From: Dimorphilus gyrociliatus
Taxonomy: Eukaryota; Animalia; Annelida
Reading direction: 5' to 3'
NCBI GenBank assembly: GCA_904063045.1
Contig: CAJFCJ010000002.1
Coordinates: 3,405,891 to 3,469,890 of the forward strand
Length of the DNA: 64,000 bases
The notes under the pieces are model-generated. The model worked only from the letters and a program-made list of their open reading frames with translations, was not told the DNA's origin and did not search any database. The stretch's first letter is position 1, and each line of letters opens with the position of its first letter. This document shows positions 38,001 to 54,361 of the stretch, one piece after another. A program made the position numbers and the translations under genes.

Positions 38001-40955
38001 AGTATGAACAAAAACTGAATTAGAGTTCCTTCTATTCTTTTGCTCTGTCAGTTTTACAACCTATTGTTGAAAGATATAAAAGTTTCTCACACATACATAC
38101 AAACATTTTCTCTCTCTCTCTCTCTCTCTCTGACACACACACACACATACTCTCCCTTTCTATTCTTCTTATAAGTTCTCCTTTCTTATTCATAGAGTAA
38201 TCTACTGTATTTCTTTCGGGTCAATTAACATGGCTTTGAGCTTCCTTAGTAATAGAATTGAAAGTTTCCTTCCTGTAATTCCAATCTAAATATTTCTTTT
38301 ACGGAATAAGAACAAAATTGGTATTTGATCTAGTAAACAAAACTAATATTTCCATATTTTTCTTTAAAACAAGCTTGTACAAGTAGCACTTGAAATCTTA
38401 AAAATGGAAATATTTCTAAAGATCGATAATGCAAAATAATTGATTGAAATTTCCATTGAGATAATCTCAGTTATTTCTTTCAACTAATCGATCGATAGTT
38501 TAAAATTTTTCCTATTGCAAGTTTATATACATATATTTTTTTTTTACTCTTTTCCCTTTTTCCCTTTTTTCCTTTTTTTTTTCCTTTTTCCTTTTTTCCC
38601 TCTCTTTTTATTTTAATATGGGATTTCGAGTCCATTACACGTTTCGGCTTAGTGTTTTTTTTTCTTCTATTTTTAGTAATTCCCCAATTGATTTAAAAAT
38701 ATTTGAGATCTATAAAAAAAATATGTTTCTATGAATTATAGTGTATTTTTAGAGATAATAATAAAAATTGTATATAAATTCGAATGTGATCCATTAATAG
38801 TGAATGTAAAAATAGTGTCTTATAGGTAAAGAAAAGTATGTTTTCTCATGATAAGATCCAGTTAATTAATTGATTTCAATGAAAATTACTTTTAGTCTCT
38901 TCTCCTTCTTAATATTTTATATTATTGAATTACTTAAATTGAATCATCCATATTGGCTTAGAACATTAAACATTACCATGGTTACCAATGGATTTAACTT
39001 AGAATACTAAGAGAAGACAGCCTTTAATCTATAGGATATTAAATAAAGAACAGAAGGTAAAGAAAGAATTGTCAGATAATAGATGATAATACAAAATATA
39101 TAAATCATAGAATAATGACTCCCTTTCCTTGAAAGAAAAAAAGGTAAAACAATCGATGTAAGAATGTTTTATTGGCGTTTCACAAAGTATTATTCGTAAG
39201 GAATTGACATATTTCTCCGATTTTTGTTTTGTTCTTTTCCCATTTCAGATTTATTATATTTTATTTGGAAACTATTGAAAAACTATATAAAAGGTTTAGT
39301 AAGAATATAAGAAAAATTCTAATACATATAATAAAACAATTTAAAAATTCTTTGATGATATTGAAAACGAAAGAAAACAGTAGGATTTTCTTAAATGTTT
39401 ACATTCCTTAGGTTTTTTTTTATTAAAGTTTTCTAGTTGAAGATTGTTACCAACCTCCTTACTTTCGCATCAATACTAAATGCAATGTAAAAGTCGATGG
39501 TGTAGACATAAACGCAATATAAATGGGTTAAGACAAACGAGTTTTAGTGCGAATAAAGTTAGTACATTTTAGGTACAGTTCACACTGAAAAAGGTAACTT
39601 TAAATTATTATTAAAGTATATTTCTTTATAAATTCAACTGTTAAAATAGAGTTTATGTAACATTTTTCACTCTTATTCCATAAATTAAATACTTTTATGG
39701 CTGTTTTAAATTCAAAGTCCCATTTAAGTTCTTATAAGCTTCTTTATTATTATTTGATAATTTTACATGAATATTAAATTCTTAGTTATTTGTCACATAG
39801 TAGAAGACCTTTCAGCTCTTTCATTTCCTTTCATTTCCCTTTTGATTTTCTCTTCTTATCAAAGGCTCTTTTTTTCTTCTTTTTATTCTCTTCTTCATTA
39901 TTTTTACCATTTTTATAATGTTTATAGTATTGTTTGAATATTATATACTTGACATTTTAAACTTAATAGTAACGAGAGTAAGGCTGTAAATCTTTTAGGC
40001 TTACAAACATTAATCCCTTACGCAGTTGCATTAGAAATTCTTTTGTAAAAATATAAATAATTAATGAAGATTTTTCACTAGACTGACACGCTTTAAAAAG
40101 GTCAGTAAATTCTCGCCAGAGATACTCGAAGTAGCGAATTTTTAATGATGCATCTCAGTAGGAAAATATCTTGTTTTTATAAGATATCTATGATTTAAGA
40201 ATATACAGTAGTTGAGAGGTTTCTTTTCTTTTCTTCTTATCTTGAAACATGTACACTTTCGGTGATATTCCAATGAATATATATTAGCTATTTAAAAGTT
40301 TTAACGAATGTTTTTATTGATGAGATTTCTAAATTTTTCTCAGGTTAAGAGCGAAGCAAATTCTGATCCAAATCCAACGCTACTAGCAGAACTACGAATT
40401 TTAAGGTCGAGAAGAGATGAGTTGGAAAATCGAATGTGTGCTCTGCAAGAGTCCCGCCGAGAATTGATGATACAACTGGAAAGCTTGATGACACTGCTGA
40501 AAACTTCCCCAAGTCATAGTCATGGAAGTCAATCGAATGCTGGCCATATGTCACCAAAATCACCCGTTAGGTCAGAAGGATCGAGATCTTTACGAAATGA
40601 CCTTCTCCTAGCTGCTGATAGTTTGACAAATGCTATGTCTAGTTTGGTCAGAGATTTGCATTCGGGAGAGTCCGACGAGGAAGATGAAGAAGACGAAGTC
40701 AATTGGATGAAGGAAAAAGAATATGAAGAACAATTTATGATGGAACTAGCCGCCAGGGAAGCACCGCCTCAGGAAGAGAAAGAATTGTACGACAATGAAC
40801 CCTCAGCTTTAGAAAGGAATGTTCTATTAGAAGATTTACAAACAAAAATAATATCAGACGATGTAGAAACAGATGCAGAAAGTTATATAAGGACAGACGA
40901 TGATGATGATGGAACTGATTGGGAAGAAGCAATGAGAAGATGGGTAAATCGATGA
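28150..40955 (+). CDS. DTNB/dyb: Dystrobrevin, ~672 aa; exons 28150-28234, 31162-31215, 31341-31415, 32792-33008, 34435-34595, 34726-34877, 36750-36861, 36928-37478, 40344-40955
   Basis: [33 protein letters not shown] (dystrobrevin EF1), EAPSFGY, ZZ finger CQVC...YLCNIC...LCQSCFWRG...H...H, syntrophin-binding [17 protein letters not shown], two coiled coils, no WW domain. Spliced length 2019 nt, in frame. The first three small exons are less certain than the rest. Confidence 0.9.
28490..28680. repeat. Compound (AT)n/(GT)n microsatellite region
   Basis: (TA)n at 28490-28512 and 28568-28585; (TG)n at 28626-28652. Confidence 0.9.
31861..32082. repeat. (CT)n ... (GA)n inverted repeat in a dystrobrevin intron
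   Basis: Left arm (CT)21-ATTTCTC (31861-31909), right arm GAGAAAT-(AG)17 (32041-32082); about 42 bp complementary including the interruption. Confidence 0.8.
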
Positions 40956-45955: not shown

Positions 45956-48900
45956 TCAACCTAGTGTAGGCCTATCGTCGTAGAGAGTTGGAGCTTGAAC
46001 AATTATACCAAAAGTACCAACAATACAGGCTGCTGAGAAAATCCAAAGGAAGAGACGATCAAGAACCATAGCAACGAATTGCCAATCTTGTTTTATCTAT
46101 TAGAATGGAAATGAATAAGTACATCTCTGTATTAGTATGTTAATTAATTTTATATTTTTAATGATTTAATAAATAATTAATTACTCTATTAAATTCATCC
46201 TGTTGCTTTAAGTGTTCTGCAATGAAGCCAACACCGATCATGGCTTGTATGGCATTGGCGGGTAAATTGGAAGAATCTTGAAGTGGTTGCTGATATTCCT
46301 CCTCCCTTACATACATTAGATTATCTTGATAAGGCTGCTTCTCATAATCAAAATTTCTTGTCTCCAATCCATCACCCCTCCTGACTGTCACCCGCCGATT
46401 ATTTTTTATTTCGTAGGCTGACATGGGCCTCCTCATTAACAAAAGTTTGGGTAAAACTTGCAGGAAGAGCTCCCTTATCCAAGGACTCATGACATGAGTA
46501 CTTGGACTCCGAAAGTGCATGTTTAACACAAAAACTGTCACTATAATTGAACAAGTCACTAGTACCATTGTAAAAAGCAGATATTTTCCAATTAAAGGAG
46601 TTGCTAAAGAAGTCGGTGGATTTATTTCAGCAACAAGCAGTAAAAAGATGTTGAGAGAATTTAAAATTGTAATACCCATAGTAATCTTCTCACCAGAATT
46701 GGCTGGTATGTAAAAGACTAATAGCGTCACGCTACAGATGGCGACACATGGTAAAATAAGATTTACTGTATAAAAAAGTGTTTTCCTTCTTATCGTAATG
46801 TTAAATTTTATGTCTGGAAATGGTTCGCTGCAGCAAGGGTAATATTTTTGATATTTTCTTGCAGGAACTGCCAGTAGATCCCACTCTGTACTTGAGTAAT
46901 AATCTCCAAGATCTATACCTCTTTCAACGACATCCAAGTCGCTCTGTTTTTCGGATAGCTCTTTGTGTTTTACATCCACAGAATAGCCATCGTAGCTCCA
47001 GCTTCCAATCTTCAAAGTACACAATTGTTCATCGAATGGAAAAAATTCGACATTAATTGGACAGAGAGATTTGTAAATTGCTGGTGGTTTCCATACTACT
47101 CTACCCGTATTATGCACTGTTGCTTTTGTTTTTAATTTGACAGTAAAATTTCCATCTGCCGAATTATATAATACAATATCAGGCAACCATAATTTCTCAG
47201 ATGGAACATATATACGAGTAACTCCTCCATATTCTTCTGGTCGCCATTGAAGCTTGTAGTCTGTCCACTCTTGTTCCAACCAGACGTTTGTCGTCATAAT
47301 TTGATTTTTTTCATCCTGTAAAACGAGAAAAAAATGAAACATCAAAGTATTGTTTAATAAAAGAATAAGCTAAAGACGAAGATTATACAAGTTTGGTGAG
47401 AAATTACAATATAAAACGTTTATATTACTCTCTGGCTATCAATCGTCTCCCTATTTTCACTTGATAAACCTAACAAGTAACGTTTAAGGGATCAAAACAG
47501 TTGACAAGGTAGAAATTAAAACATCATTTTTATTTATTACAATAATTATTTCACTAATGAATACAAGAAAATTTAGTAGTAAATAGAAAAAAAGAGAGTT
47601 CTTTCTAATTTATTATATGGATTTCTTTTACGGCGAATATCTATATATCTATTGTGAAAATTTTTACAAAGCAAACATCAAATACCATAATCCCTTTTTA
47701 TTTTAGTTAAAGTATTAAAAATCATACATTTTCATCTTTTTTTCTGTCTTTGCCTTTATATTAGTATATATATATATAAATTTTATATTGACTATATATA
47801 CAAATTTACATATATACTGTATATATACTTTGTATATACACTATTTATATATTCTTCTAATATTTTCATCTTCATAAGGCTTCTAGCTATTTTTATGATT
47901 TTATTTCTTTTCTAGTTGTTTTCTTTTTGGATTTTTTTCTCTATTTTTCTTTTAGTTTGCCGGTACAGAGCTCCTATTGATTTCTGCGACCCAATTTCTT
48001 CAAAGCTACACGCTACTATGTCTGTCTCGAATCTCTTCCAACATCCTCTGCCAGCCTAACTGTTTATCTATCAATTTATAGTACCCTAATCAAACGTAAA
48101 AGAGAGGACAATAGTTTATCATCATTACAGCAAATATTGATTTCCTTTTATCAATAAATCAATGAAATGTCCACGTGAATTTGTCAATTATCCAGCTGTC
48201 AAATGATTTCTGTCAATTCGTACAACATGGGAAAAGCAAGCATTCCTAACTATATTGAATATATGATTTATTTAGACTGAAGGACGCTATCCGTTTGAAG
48301 CTTATAATAAGTATTTTTTCCTTTACTTCATTTAAACAATCTTTTGTTCTTTTGAAAAAAAATTTCGTTTCCTTTTGCTTTTCCTCTTTCCATTTTCCCA
48401 TTTTCCGTTTCTTCTCTTCGATCGATAATTAAATTATTTTATGCTTCAGAGAAGGAAAAACTTTTATACACCTTAATTAATATTTTTAATTTTCCCTTTT
48501 ATTTTTCAATTAGGAAAAACAATATACTATCTATAGTGTTAGAAGTATAGACTGTGCACACTGTGTATCAATGTATACAGAACACTGTGTATACGAGTAT
48601 AAATATATACAAGTTTTCTATACGAGTTTGCTCTCTCTATCTCCCTCTCCCCTCTCTCTCTCTCTTTGCTAACTGGTGACTAGTGATATTCAACGGCAGT
48701 TGCTGTGAAATATCTGCTTTCTATCATTTACGGTAAACTAGAGAGATTTACTGATACAGAGATTTGAAAGAATTGCAATATTATTCGATTATTAATTTAT
48801 CAATAGCTATTAAATCATAATCGATTTTAGCAAACTAAACATACTTTTTTTTTATATTTATTAGTTTGTTTTTAATTAAATAGAAAGTATAATATTTAAC

Positions 48901-49900
48901 TTGACACACAGCTGAAAGAGCCAACTTTTCTATCTAGTTTCTCGTAAATCTCTTAGTCTTTTTGCGATGAAAGTATATTCGTATTCGCATTTGTAATTAT
49001 AAATGGCTATCGAATGGTTTATTTTATCTATAGAAGAAACGTATTATTAACGGAAATCTCTTTTTCTTTACCGTTTCTCTCCATCTATTTCTATACTAAG
49101 AACTATTTATTTCTAAAAAAAAAATTAATGAAGAGAGAATTTAAGGGGAGTACGCTTGGATAATTTAGGCGAGAAACCTCCGAGTTAAAAGGTCATAATA
49201 GTAATAAGGTTTTTCCCGCTTTTCGTGACTTCCTTATTAAAACTTTTCTGGGTCATTTTCTGTTCTTAAGCCCCCGCTTTAAGCGAGGAGGAAAGCATTA
49301 CTAATGGAGGTTTAGAATCGATTTACATTCTAAACACGTTCAAGGGTCTCCCATCAACACTTCTCAAGGGAAGACACGAAATCAACTCTAACCAATTTGG
49401 ATATTTGTTTGTTACATTAAAAACTGTAAGAATTGAAAGTAGAGTCAATCGCAGGCTTAATCCGTAATGATAGTATAATTTTGCAGTACTTTATATACTC
49501 CAGACTGGAAAATCGCCTTAAATAGCCGGCCGCCTGGAGCAGATAGGTAATTCAATAAATAGCGAGCTTTTAAGACAAACTAACATTATCGATTGATACG
49601 CTATTCCAGAACGAGGAACCGCATTGCAGTATTTTGTAGTCGGTAAAACTTTTTTACACACGTTTCCGTGGCAACGGAATTAGACAAGTCGACCTAGTTT
49701 TTTTTCACACTTACCACATCAATAATCTGAGTCAGCCGTAGCCCGAGGGAGACGGTTAGAGTATCGGTTGAATTATCAACTGGTCGTATTAATTTATTGT
49801 ACTTTTTACTTCCTAGTAGCTCATCATATAAACGTTTCGCATCTGGAGACGCCCGACAGCCGAAAATCGTTAGCAAAGTCAAGAAAACGACGCTGGCCAT
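45956..49900 (-). CDS. CHRNA: Nicotinic acetylcholine receptor alpha subunit, 485 aa; exons 49900-49715, 47315-46185, 46096-45956
   Basis: Signal peptide + [10 protein letters not shown]; Cys-loop [15 protein letters not shown]; loop A YNSADG; loop B WSYDG; vicinal cysteines YPCC; GEK before TM2; TM4 [17 protein letters not shown]. All introns phase 0 with GT-AG. Confidence 0.96.
49662..49675. promoter_or_regulatory. RFX X-box-like element in nAChR intron 1
   Basis: GTTTCCGTGGCAAC versus X-box consensus GTHNYY-AT-RRNAAC (one mismatch in the spacer). Confidence 0.3.
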
Positions 49901-51378
49901 GTTGCTTTGCAGGCGTTTTTCCAGATTTTCCAGTTGCTCGACTGAAGCGTCATCTGCGTTTCACTTTACCCCATCTGGCGGTCGCTGCACTCTTAAGAGT
50001 TCGTTATACCCGTTTTCTTTGTATTTTATTAAATAGTAATTGAAAAATAAATTAATACTTTATAAATAATTTAAGACCAATAATTACAGTTTAGTATAAA
50101 CCACATATTTATTTATGTTTTCCAAGAACTTTGTTCTTATCATTTATAATAGAAATTTCAAGTACAACACGTGTAGATAATTTAAATTGAAAAGACCAGT
50201 TCAATTCAGTTAATGATTTCCTCTAAACAGAAATTATTTGCTCAAACAGACTCTTAAAATCTTTAAAAAGATGTAAACTTAAATGAATTATTCATTTAAT
50301 GAATGATAATTAAAAGAGAGCGTAGTAGTGATATTTAACAAGCTGTCTTAAGAAAATATTAAAGAGACAGGAAACTTTGCCAAGGTGACGTCACTGCTTA
50401 AAAATTAAAGAATAGATAATATTGTTTTTTTTATTAGTAAAGCTATTTACTCCGATAATTTGGGTAACTGCCTGAAAGGAAAGCTAGCCTTGGGTTTGTA
50501 GAGTAGTAGTAATAGCCTTGGTATAGAATAAGTAGAATATAATAAAATACTTCCATATTACATAAATGTACTTCAAGTTTGCATTATTGAGTTATTTAAA
50601 TGGAGATGTTTTGGAACTAGATTATCATTTTTATTGATCATTAAAATATTAACATATCAAAAGGAAAGTGGTTAAAATTATTGCTCTTATCGATTCTCAA
50701 TTTATCATAAGTATTCATTTTCCCAATTAAGATAGCTTTTTGGTGGAAAGCTTTCGATTTAGTATCTTTTTTTCGCAATTTTGGTTGATCGATAGGGTTA
50801 TATCGAGTACTATTATAAATCCCAGTTTCATGCAGCTGTCGTTTCATATTCCCAAGCAGCTAAAAATTATATAAGCTGAATTAATCAGTTATAGAGCTGA
50901 TTAAACTATTATAAACCATTTAAGGCAGTGCACTTTTGACTGTTGATATTAACAAAATTTTGATGATTTATCGAGAATTATCTCTATATCTGCTGCCTTT
51001 CCGGCTTCTTCCCCAATTGTTTATTTGATAAAGAGAATTATGGATTTTACCGGATGAGAACTACTAAAAGAGCATTAAACAACGGATTGAAATCTTTGCA
51101 AGTACCGATTAACATTTCCAGTTGAGGCTCTATTCCTCGTCAGGGCCTTCAGCTCTCTTCCTGTGTAGAAATTATTAAAGTTCGTTTAGAAAACATTATC
51201 CGAAGCGCCATCTGCCATATAAAACTAGAACGGCAATCTTCAGGAAAACATTCAATTAATCTCTCTCATTATCCGAAGCTTTACTAGGCGTCGCCACTGT
51301 CTGACTAAGGAAACTTTTCGCTATTTTACCCCGAAACGAGCGCTTTTGTAGACACATAAACAATAAAAAGAAGGAAGT
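49901..51378. promoter_or_regulatory. Divergent (bidirectional) promoter interval between nAChR alpha and neuroligin
   Basis: The two start codons are 1.48 kb apart, head to head. Contains a full CRE palindrome GTGACGTCAC (50385-50394), an E-box CAGCTG (50833) and a CTCF-like GCGCCATCT (51205-51213). Confidence 0.6.
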
Positions 51379-54361
51379 ATGTTGGAAGAAAGAACATTTA
51401 CTCAACTCCTTCTCCTGATATTTTTTGAACATTCAACCAATTGTGCCAAGGCGTCAAAGTCTGTTTTGCTACCGTATTTAACGAGGACGAGATTAGGACC
51501 AGTTAGAGGAACTCGTACGACTTTAGATAATCTTGGACAAGTTGACACGTTTATCGGTGTGAGGTACGCTACGACAAGGGGTGGATCGCTTCGCTTTATG
51601 CCTCCTACAACCTATTCAAGTAGGTTTGAAGAAGTTGAAAACCTTAATGGTTTCACTGGGTGTCCACAACGAAAACTGGATTTTGAAAAGCTACTAAAGA
51701 AGACACCCAGTAGAAGGGTTAAGGAGCTCGATAGAATCCTTTTAGCATTCAAAAACCAGGCTTTTATCCCAGTCGAAGATTGCCTGACCTTAAACATATT
51801 CCGGCCTGCCTTGGGTTAGTTCTTACTTTTATTTCTCTCTAAAGAGTTGAAACAGGTGTAAAATTTAACTGTTTTTTATTTTGTTTTCCGAAATTTAAAA
51901 GAGGACTGATGAGTTTTTCCAAATTGTTGAAGATGTAAATTAGATTTATCTATATCCTAACTAACGTAATAAGCATTAAAACATACTAGCCATTTAAAAA
52001 AGTAAAAGACCATTGTACAAAGTATATTTTTTGCAAAAATTAGAACAACGAATCATAAAAAAAATCATTATTCTTCTAAAAAGGATAGGATTAATCCTTT
52101 AAAAATCCATGCAACCCTTTTTCCAATTCCCTAACTTTCCTAAATTACCAATTTTTCTTAATCAGATTGAAATGTACAACGAAATAATTGTCCCGGTTGC
52201 ATGTTCCCTTTACTATAATTTTTTTTTATCAGACGATACAAACAGGTGTTACAGTTGGACATTGTGTTTGTTTTATAAACTGCAAAATTTTTTAGACTAA
52301 GGTCAATATTTCGCCCCCTATGCCCCAAGCTCACAATCTCAGAGTTCATCGTTAGATTACATTGTTTATTATCTTTAAAAAAAATTGATTTATCAAAATG
52401 TATGAATTATTATTTTTTAAATAGAAAATAATACAATTTTTATTTTTAACTAAAAAAATTTTATATCAATAAATAGAAAATCAGATTTATTCTTAAGCTA
52501 AAATGAAAAAAAAACTATCTAAGAGGGATTTAATACTTTTTTTCTATTGGCTAACGTCATTTTGGCGCCGACTATTTAATTTTTTATTTGAGATAGAAGG
52601 TTAGTAGAGAAAGGGAGAGAGCATGAAGGAGTAGAAAGATTGGAATAATTGGATGAAGTGACTAAGAGCTTTCCTTTTTTTTTGTATTGAAATGCAACAA
52701 TAAAGCTGTCCCAAACCGGTCAGGGAAGGCGCAAGGGTGGACGAAATCGAATATCAGATACAAGCAATTCAGATAGGGTTTTTATTCCCTCGGCAAAATT
52801 TGGCTCTCTTTTTGTTGCTACGACGAAAGCGGAGGATTTAAATTGAGATGATTTAATGGCCGACTTCTGATTCGTATTTTTAATAGGCAAAGGCACTTTT
52901 GATAAATTAAAGGGTCTTCCAGAAAACCTGAAACTGTTCCTCTGCTTTTCATTTTTCAATGGTTTCCCTGTCAATTCTATCTCCTATCTAAAAAAATTTC
53001 CATTACTTTTGGATAGCTCTAAACAATCAAAGAACAACTAACGATCCTTTCCTTAAATCAATAAGTAATAGCCTTGCATTTTTCTTTTTGGAATCGTTCA
53101 TATTTAATACATTTCTTCCAATATAATTATAATTAATAAGCATGATTGTCTATTTTTTGTTGCTAAAGAAAAAACTTATTCTTTCTTGTGTAGAGAAGAA
53201 AGAATCGTCTATAATTTAATTAAAGACATCTACCCAACATTATCCAATAGTTAATTGTTATACAGTATATCTTACAACGTTTATATTTCTATATTTCTTA
53301 TTTTTAGCAATTGATAAGGAATATATGAATGAGTAGAAAGTAGTTAATCGATAAGCTTCTACGTTTGATTACACTTTATATCTTTTGACCTTCACGCCAA
53401 TTCTCAATTAGAGATCGAAGCCCTTGTGTATTTCTAAGCAAAATTCTACTATTATGATATTTATTGAGAAATTCGAGTGGCAATATCGTATTTCTTAAAT
53501 AAAATAACATCATTTCTTCTATTAAAGCTTTTCATATTTTATAGAAAAATATTAACTCATAGCAGAAGGCAATGAGAAATATTCCCCTCTTTGAGTGAAC
53601 AACACAAAAGGGATGTAGTAATTCATTCAACAGTATCAAAAATTGAATATCCCACTCTCAATGTATATTTGTAGCCAAATTAGAATTATAGGTTAAAATC
53701 TAAAAATTTTGAATAAAAGTCATGTTAATTTATCTCTATCCTCTTTTGAAACTTCTCCTCTAATCTAAATATTCATTCCTTTTTCGTATATGAAAGTAGA
53801 GAAAATTCTCTCTGAAAACAATAATAAATTTGATTATATATGACAAACACCAAAAAATTGTTGCGTATTTAACGGTTTGTTAGGTGAGAAATCGGGAAGA
53901 AATACACTAAAACGAGTACAAAGGATAATTATCACTTAAAATGGTTGTGGATTTTTTTTTAACCAAAATCATTTAGCCATAATTAAGATTAACAATGTAA
54001 AAGGTTGAATTTTATAAGATACTATCGTGATTTTGTAGAAAATTTCAATAAATGACTTTCAAATTTTTTTAAAATTCAATATTAACCAATCAAAAACGAA
54101 TGTAGTCCGAATAATTTGACCAATAGTCGCCGATTCCATTGCCTACTTAATTTACTCATTCGTATTGGCAGGCAATAATCAAATTCGAACAAGGGAATTT
54201 TCCTTCTATTGTATACGACATATACGTTAGACAGGGCTGAGACGAAAAATCCGAAATTTAAACAAATCAATAGAGTAAGAAAGGTTGTAGTTGCAACTGA
54301 GAATAGACTTTTAGAATGAGACCGATAGAAAAAGCGTGGAGTATATATATATGTGTGTTTT

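Follow-up and report, generated by a model that had tools for sequence, protein, structure and literature searches.

An annelid class of nicotinic acetylcholine receptor alpha subunits with asparagine at the 9' gate position

Introduction

The leucine at position 9' of the second transmembrane helix (M2) is the textbook gate residue of Cys-loop receptors, and its replacement by a polar residue is the standard route to hypersensitive, non-desensitising channels. The gene described here encodes an alpha-type nicotinic acetylcholine receptor (nAChR) subunit with asparagine at this position. It lies on the minus strand of a 64,000-nucleotide stretch of the genome of the miniature annelid Dimorphilus gyrociliatus (assembly GCA_904063045.1, contig CAJFCJ010000002.1, positions 3,405,891 to 3,469,890), referred to as the window, and all coordinates below are positions in the window.

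Natural subunits without Leu at 9' show that the position is not strictly invariant and that its variants work inside heteromers. Vertebrate beta3 and alpha5 carry Val, as seen in beta3a of the fish Silurus (P0030), and insect, nematode, and nemertean subunits are found with Ile or Val. These natural variants are hydrophobic, whereas the annelid Asn, with Thr in a few relatives, is polar.

In nicotinic pores, the side chains of 9' Leu and 13' Val build a hydrophobic girdle, which presents an energy barrier (PMC3820380). The L247T mutation of alpha7 is reported to reduce desensitisation dramatically (PMC3281115). Such engineered mutants, which include alpha7 L247T and the Ser, Thr, and Ala replacements of L9' in muscle and alpha4 receptors, resemble the annelid subunit in that a polar residue replaces the gate leucine. 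They differ in that each is a single change in a Leu-adapted pore, whereas the annelid Asn is natural and ancient and is accompanied by seven other fixed M2 changes.

Related annelid proteins have been listed for the leech Hirudo verbana. PMC6054404 names its nAChR4 and nAChR6 with their expression, does not discuss the pore, and reports that nAChR6 is the most abundant of the nAChR transcripts detected in the central nervous system (CNS) of the leech. A UniProt entry named nAChR6 (P0005) is a member of the clade described below and has an M2 identical to that of the Dimorphilus gene.

The Asn-9' Pore

The minus strand from 49900 to 45956 holds an intact three-exon alpha-type nAChR subunit gene of 485 codons (Table 1). 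With the M2 lysine numbered 0', minus-strand translation of 46500-46850 and a gap-free alignment to M2 of human alpha4 place Asn at 9' (AAT, 46661-46659) and at 12' (AAC, 46652-46650), both of which had been proposed from a sequence-only reading of the window. That reading had also held that two or more base changes separate the 9' codon from every Leu codon and that a single-base error is unlikely. The first point is borne out by the codon itself, since the route from CTT passes through ATT or CAT before it reaches AAT, and the second by the other species, in which all 54 aligned clade members carry Asn at 9', encoded by AAT or AAC in all six orthologue loci whose DNA was compared. The canonical gate of 9' Leu and 13' Val is replaced here by Asn and Ile.

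By every defining feature tested except the gate leucine, the predicted product is a member of the nAChR family. The alpha-type assignment made in the sequence-only reading agrees with the YxCC motif of loop C, the Cys-loop, and the Gly-Glu-Lys (GEK) cation motif, all of which were found. The Pfam domains Neur_chan_LBD and Neur_chan_memb follow one another in the correct order over the three exons, as expected of a Cys-loop channel. The aromatic box is present, with Tyr in loop A, Trp in loop B, Tyr in loop C, and Trp in loop D, and the second Tyr of loop C is Phe in this gene. At that second position the clade is aromatic-conservative, with Tyr in 39 members and Phe in 15. The acetylcholine (ACh)-binding residues are otherwise uniform across the clade, including loop B Trp (43/43), loop C Tyr (54/54), and the vicinal Cys-Cys pair (54/54), and the loop A Tyr and loop D Trp are present in all spliced clade sequences.

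Cation selectivity is equally well marked. The GEK motif, including the -1' Glu, is found in all 54 members, the 20' Glu is found in 50 of them, and the Pro-Ala-Arg anion motif is absent. Along the pore-lining stripe at -1', 2', 6', 9', 13', 16', and 20', the residues change from E/T/S/L/V/L/E in the sister group to E/T/T/N/I/L/E in the clade. The Leu residues at 16' and 17' are invariant in the clade.

Among solved structures, a phmmer search ranked human alpha4 first (E = 8.5e-106), followed by alpha3, alpha6, beta2, beta4, muscle alpha1, and alpha7 (3.6e-88), with alpha4, alpha3, and alpha6 together spanning about 1e-106 to 1e-99. The subunit is thus placed by similarity in the heteromer-forming branch of alpha2-6/beta2-4 and insect alpha/beta subunits, apart from alpha7. 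The comparison with alpha7 that had been chosen in the sequence-only reading was therefore off, since the nearest solved relatives are of the heteromeric alpha4/alpha3/alpha6 type, and an alpha7-type homomer was rejected as the default on the same grouping.

Human alpha4, alpha3, and alpha6 (CHRNA4, e.g., PDB 8ssz chain A), themselves heteromer-forming, share with the Dimorphilus subunit the fold, the Cys-loop, the YxCC motif, the GEK ring, and the 20' Glu. At 9', 12', and 13', the Leu, Thr, and Val of alpha4 are replaced in the Dimorphilus gene by Asn, Asn, and Ile, and the gene has Asn at 22' and an Ala-Thr M2-M3 linker as well. It also differs from alpha4 in the Phe that stands for the second loop C Tyr and in a 12-residue insertion at approximately 46930-46965 (exon-2 residues 117-128), which separates beta8 from beta9 and precedes loop F. 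A segment of comparable length occupies this site in the orthologues from Paralvinella and Hirudo.

Within the D. gyrociliatus genome, Asn at 9' occurs in this gene only among the best loci searched, and Leu occupies the position in 13 of 16 recognisable M2 segments. The nearest paralogue (L002) is 66% identical, has an ordinary Leu-9' M2, and corresponds to the annotated D. gyrociliatus protein DgyrCDS5376 (P0052) with zero mismatches and one intron-sized gap, a match that bears out the species assignment. A separate locus (L018, G000:C19:104199-104927) encodes a Cys-loop subunit that is divergent, has the selectivity motif P-D-R, and carries Ser at 9'. Polar residues at 9' are also present in fast-evolving orphan subunits of this genome, whereas the subunit described here is a highly conserved core one.

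An Annelid Clade of Asn-9' Subunits

A survey of orthologues for 9' Asn, which the sequence-only reading had proposed, places the residue well beyond this gene. In a homology search with the exon 2 product, 23 of the best 120 hits have an M2 identical or nearly identical to that of this gene, with Asn at both 9' and 12'. The other 97 hits come from molluscs, brachiopods, nemerteans, Owenia, rotifers, arthropods, nematodes, and a fish (a beta3 subunit); 74 have Leu at 9', 12 have Val, 10 have Ile, and one is an apparently mis-modelled protein. A second search, scored on transmembrane segments TM1-TM3 alone, added 38 further Asn-9' clusters, a small Thr-9' group, and one Val-9' sequence pair. 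In all, approximately 60 protein clusters share this M2, a few of which differ by one or two conservative residues. Rather than being private to this gene, Asn at 9' is fixed across the predicted proteins of an old group of annelid orthologues.

The named Asn-9' members are from Paralvinella palmiformis, Ridgeia piscesae, Helobdella robusta (two proteins), and Hirudo verbana (nAChR4 and nAChR6), which together with Dimorphilus represent Dinophilidae, Alvinellidae, Siboglinidae, and two leech families. M2 is letter-for-letter identical in Dimorphilus, Paralvinella, Ridgeia, Helobdella A, and Hirudo nAChR6, a range that takes in both leeches and worms of deep-sea vents. The Paralvinella orthologue is 73% identical overall to the exon 2 product. 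Hirudo nAChR6 is 66% identical overall and 96% identical in TM1-TM3, while Hirudo nAChR4 is 62% identical overall and 86% identical in TM1-TM3, and its M2 differs only at 4' (Ala for Gly).

Leeches have two Asn-9' paralogues, whereas Dimorphilus has one. Helobdella A pairs with Hirudo nAChR4 and Helobdella B with nAChR6 (P0003/P0007 and P0006/P0005 for Helobdella/Hirudo; loci L036 and L037), and Asn is kept at 9' and 12' in both lines. Because the paralogues pair across genera, the duplication predates the split of Helobdella and Hirudo.

Many clade entries derive from genomic contigs (ENA, JGI, Logan) on which the large exon was called, in prokaryote style, as an open reading frame (ORF). Two others, P0002 and P0015, are full-length proteins on contigs of approximately 2 kb, which identifies them as spliced transcripts.

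A few relatives, all on metagenome-derived contigs, depart from Asn at 9'. Four Thr-9' sequences lie inside the clade (P0160-P0162 and P0164; locus L033, codon ACG), three with Ile at 12' and one, P0160, with Asn. A Val-9' pair (P0163/P0206; locus L034, codon GTG) has Thr at 12' and a linker that is still Val-Val. A homology search with P0163 returned no named orthologue, and its next best hit was 63% identical. A Leu to Val to Asn series is not claimed because the placement of P0163 inside the clade is poorly supported in the more careful of the two trees. A query of the Protein Atlas produced nothing beyond generic clusters of vertebrate nAChR and 5-HT3 receptors and gave no taxon information.

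Phylogeny and Origin

The clade is recovered in both trees. A quick tree of 88 sequences recovers it with a Shimodaira-Hasegawa-like approximate likelihood-ratio test (SH-aLRT) value of 95 and sets it beside a spiralian Leu-9' "alpha-like" group (SH-aLRT 87) that includes Owenia, the Dimorphilus paralogue, nemerteans, molluscs, and Lingula. The careful tree (IQ-TREE, 49 rows) was built with the M2 columns removed to guard against circularity, and its 27 clade rows, comprising the Asn-9' sequences with one Thr-9' and one Val-9' sequence, form one group (ultrafast bootstrap 98, SH-aLRT 99). The node that joins the clade to the "alpha-like" group is without support in the careful tree, and the branching order within the clade is poorly supported.

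The spiralian "acetylcholine receptor subunit alpha-like" group is the closest to the clade by both score and identity. Its members, such as DgyrCDS5376 and proteins of Owenia, Lottia, Lingula, and Lineus, are 57-66% identical, are of alpha type with the same domain plan, and occur alongside clade members in the same genomes. They carry the M2 that is almost universal in protostomes, with Leu at 9', and the Asn clade differs from them at 21 diagnostic columns. The trees and alignments show what appears to be a duplication of an ordinary spiralian Leu-9' "alpha-like" subunit, after which M2 was rebuilt once. All four Owenia sequences among the named hits are Leu-9' relatives, and the sequence comparison suggests that the Asn-9' clade originated after the split from Oweniidae.

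Co-Fixed Substitutions and Selection

The 21 columns that are fixed differently were identified from 54 Asn-9' sequences and 18 sister-group sequences, and ten of them lie in M2 or its linker. Eight are in M2 itself, where the derived states are those of the Dimorphilus helix: 3' Leu to Met, 6' Ser to Thr, 9' Leu to Asn, 12' Thr to Asn, 13' Val to Ile, 15' Phe to Leu, 18' Leu to Val, and 22' Ile to Asn. The remaining two replace the Val-Val of the M2-M3 linker with Ala-Thr. The M2 diagnostic columns otherwise hardly vary in sister-group and ecdysozoan sequences.

Outside this region, the extracellular domain has five diagnostic columns, four of them directly after loop A, and the end of loop C/beta10 has one (Thr to Lys). 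TM1 contains two, and the others are Ile to Val in TM3 (exon-2 position 251), Ile to Val after TM3 (position 287), and Glu to Gln near the MA helix (position 372).

Selection was assessed from the DNA of six orthologue loci over 118 codons that run from just ahead of TM1 to just after TM3. Between Dimorphilus and each of Paralvinella, Ridgeia, the two Helobdella loci, and P0037, 85-93 of the 118 codons differ, and only 3-5 residues do. Among the other species, the ratio of nonsynonymous to synonymous substitution (dN/dS) is 0.01-0.04 where dS is measurable. The raw codon and residue counts are given because the Nei-Gojobori nonsynonymous proportion (pN) is inflated by multi-step synonymous paths at Leu and Ser codons. 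The codon counts show the remodelled pore to be under very strong purifying selection, since so many codons and so few residues differ. Saturation at synonymous sites in an almost unaltered protein rules out sequence error, contamination, and decay as a pseudogene.

The 9' codon is AAT or AAC in the Asn-9' orthologue loci, ACG in a Thr-9' member, and GTG in P0163. Polarity at 9' itself seems to be what is kept, because some clade members have Thr there while 12' tolerates Asn, Thr, Leu, and Ile; at 12', the 54 aligned members divide as tabulated below. The orthologue comparison confirms the observation at the level of predicted proteins and strengthens it, since what began as a single odd codon now stands for a conserved class of annelid receptors whose gate is remodelled and polar.

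Proposed Function

The sequence-only reading had proposed that the channel may be non-desensitising, hypersensitive, leaky, or modulatory. The interpretation that is probably correct, taken as a single package, is that the gene encodes a functional, ACh-gated, heteromeric receptor subunit whose gating is biased towards open or less desensitised states. The subunit is predicted from its sequence to bind ACh on its principal face and to form heteropentamers together with Leu-9' subunits, in the manner of its closest characterised relatives. Mixed pentamers would be expected because the subunit belongs to the heteromer-forming branch and because a Leu-9' sister subunit is kept in every annelid genome seen, and such pentamers would have two or three Asn residues in the 9' ring.

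Polar side chains at 9' would weaken the dewetted hydrophobic girdle of 9' Leu and 13' Val that closes nicotinic pores. The weakened girdle would bias the channel towards opening, so that it would be more sensitive to ACh and would desensitise more slowly or less completely. The larger Ile at 13' and the changed coupling linker would probably make the closed state stable enough again to prevent a constitutive leak. Together with the leech expression report, the analysis points to what would be a main neuronal subunit rather than a rare oddity.

Several points weigh against this biased-gating package. The direction and size of the gating effect are taken from engineered single mutants in other backgrounds, and the physiology of those mutants is not directly transferable because seven other M2 residues have also changed here, including 13' Val to Ile. 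The effect of the Asn could be offset entirely by these seven co-fixed changes. The proposed heteromeric assembly is deduced from phylogenetic position. The equation of P0005 with the nAChR6 of PMC6054404 rests on the UniProt name, and for expression in Dimorphilus an exact-match search with the product of the exon 2 ORF found no record. The taxonomic range is drawn from five named genera and D. gyrociliatus, and most members are from ENA, JGI, and Logan contigs.

The leading alternative is a compensated pore, in which the co-fixed changes shift or rebuild the gate at 13', 16', and 17', so that gating and desensitisation resemble those of Leu-9' receptors and the Asn might instead serve conductance, divalent-ion handling, or block. 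It is considered rather unlikely. The concentration of 10 of the 21 diagnostic substitutions in M2 or its linker suggests a co-adapted package and not a lone gate change, and the second girdle ring at 13' (PMC3820380) is bulkier in 50 of the 54 members. The Leu residues at 16' and 17' that could take over the gate are unchanged throughout the clade, and a main CNS subunit would be unlikely to tolerate a strong gain of function. Against compensation, polarity appears to be kept at 9', as in the ACG-encoded Thr members, while 12' varies more (Asn, Thr, Leu, Ile). Every engineered polar 9' substitution known to us shifts gating, which also weighs against it.

A homomeric or constitutively open leak channel, in which five Asn residues at 9' abolish the hydrophobic gate, would provide a tonic cation conductance or an extremely sensitive receptor for volume transmission. 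A complete principal face and the complementary-face loop D Trp are both present, and the gain of function in alpha7 is strongest when all five 9' residues are polar (PMC3281115). However, the subunit lies in the heteromer-forming branch and not with alpha7, a tonic leak from the most abundant nAChR transcript of the leech CNS (PMC6054404) would probably be harmful, and the fact that the ACh-binding residues are so strongly conserved speaks for the importance of gating by ligand. A leak channel is accordingly improbable, and it is the least likely of the physiological options.

An artefact or dead gene, whether a base or assembly error at the 9' codon or a pseudogene drifting from Leu, was rejected as hardly credible, given a frame that is intact over three exons with canonical splice sites, an Asn shared by all 54 orthologues, which come from independent assemblies and transcriptomes, and purifying selection that has left the protein nearly unchanged over saturated synonymous sites.

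Significance

Evolution itself has made the textbook polar gate change, and has done so in an apparent major CNS subunit. A wider proposal, tentative and somewhat short of probable, is that the principal neuronal nicotinic alpha subunit of the whole phylum works without the canonical 9' leucine gate. If this wider proposal were true, the pore would close elsewhere, at 13'/16'-17' or at the -1'/2' constriction, or else the receptors would be intrinsically highly sensitive and weakly desensitising, as might suit slow or volume cholinergic signalling. Divalent cations could also bind to the ring of Asn residues midway along the pore. In that case the clade would amount to a test of the hydrophobic-gating model that nature has run for half a billion years, with the compensatory mutations already supplied.

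Annelid receptors of this class offer a natural system for locating the gate when 9' is polar, and 13' Ile, 6' Thr, 12' and 22' Asn, and the Ala-Thr linker are candidate compensatory residues for reversion. In classic annelid preparations, the leech among them, they may also offer a molecular starting point for explaining unusual cholinergic responses. For annotation, clade proteins are now labelled "hypothetical" or "putative nAChR" with their pore unremarked.

A literature search found no paper that describes the Asn-9' clade or its feature, and since the search was not exhaustive, the class is provisionally undescribed. A text search of the literature found the M2 motif of the clade in no paper, and a search on annelid pentameric ligand-gated channels returned nothing relevant. 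Jiao 2019 does not mention M2, leucine, or the pore, and a paper on an Alvinella Cys-loop receptor does not mention the gate residue.

Gene Structure

Pfam and homology searches were made exon by exon. Exon 1 is 67% identical to residues 11-68 of the Paralvinella palmiformis orthologue P0001 and ends at the same terminal residue. Exon 2 runs from DEKNQ to EFNR, with a TTTTACAG acceptor ahead of 47315 and a GTAA donor after 46185, and matches the Pfam ligand-binding domain (LBD) at 5.9e-63 and the membrane region (Neur_chan_memb) at 4.7e-51. Exon 3 covers Neur_chan_memb positions 202-232, at the TM4 end of the model, and is 89% identical to P0001 residues 462-507. All exon junctions are in phase 0 with GT/AG borders, and the exon borders coincide exactly with those of P0001. 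The three-exon splice model is considered right because exons 1 and 3 align end to end with this full-length protein.

Table 1. Features of the Asn-9' receptor gene, listed in the direction of transcription (positions in the window)
Feature	Position	Strand	Description
Exon 1	49715..49900	-	ATG start codon 49900-49898, signal peptide, and initial 40 LBD residues; ends ...IIDV
Exon 1, Pfam basis	49715..49900	-	Neur_chan_LBD positions 2-40
Intron 1	47316..49714	-	GT...AG; GT donor 49714-49713 (GTAAGT after exon 1)
Exon 2	46185..47315	-	377 codons, 1131 bases; remaining LBD, TM1-TM3, and most of the cytoplasmic loop
Cys-loop (C-x13-C, FPFD core)	47019..47063	-	Exon-2 residues 85-99; Cys kept in clade and sister group
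Loop C Tyr-Pro-Cys-Cys (YPCC)	46830..46841	-	Vicinal cysteines that define an alpha subunit; Y 54/54, CC 54/54 in clade
M2 helix, -1' Glu to 22' Asn	46620..46691	-	Gap-free alignment to alpha4 M2
9' codon AAT (Asn)	46659..46661	-	Site of the conserved gate leucine
12' codon AAC (Asn)	46650..46652	-	Thr in sister group; clade N 51, T 2, L 1
M2-M3 linker Ala-Thr	46599..46604	-	Val-Val in sister group; exon-2 positions 238-239; region coupling binding to gating
Intron 2	46097..46184	-	88 bases, GT...AG
Exon 3	45956..46096	-	End of MA helix, TM4, C-terminus, and TGA stop 45958-45956 (coding 46096-45959)

Intron 1 contains low-complexity sequence at 47807-47842. The window has a G+C content of 29.6%, and the assembly comprises 77.9 Mb in 349 contigs.

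The start of the M2-bearing ORF was compared between window positions 46185-47315 and P0008-P0033 (loci L031 and L035-L038). In most other annelids, the genomic ORF begins just ahead of ...SADGNFTVK or at MTKAT, and these predicted boundaries suggest an intron within the LBD after loop A. The single 1131-base exon of Dimorphilus suggests in turn a putative intron loss in a compact genome, because the stretch from DEKNQ to the cytoplasmic loop is one exon there.

Neighbouring Features

A plus-strand open frame of 216 codons at 40305-40952 contains a heptad-like stretch and a very acidic tail and has no Pfam match. It may resemble the C-terminal coiled coil of dystrobrevin/dystrophin-type proteins.

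On the other side of the receptor gene, the plus strand at 51367-51816 holds an exon with an open frame that belongs to the carboxylesterase family (7.8e-14 to Pfam COesterase), of cholinesterase or neuroligin type. It is arranged head to head with the receptor gene at approximately 1.5 kb from the receptor start codon, and a cholinergic-type esterase fold thereby adjoins a nicotinic receptor gene.

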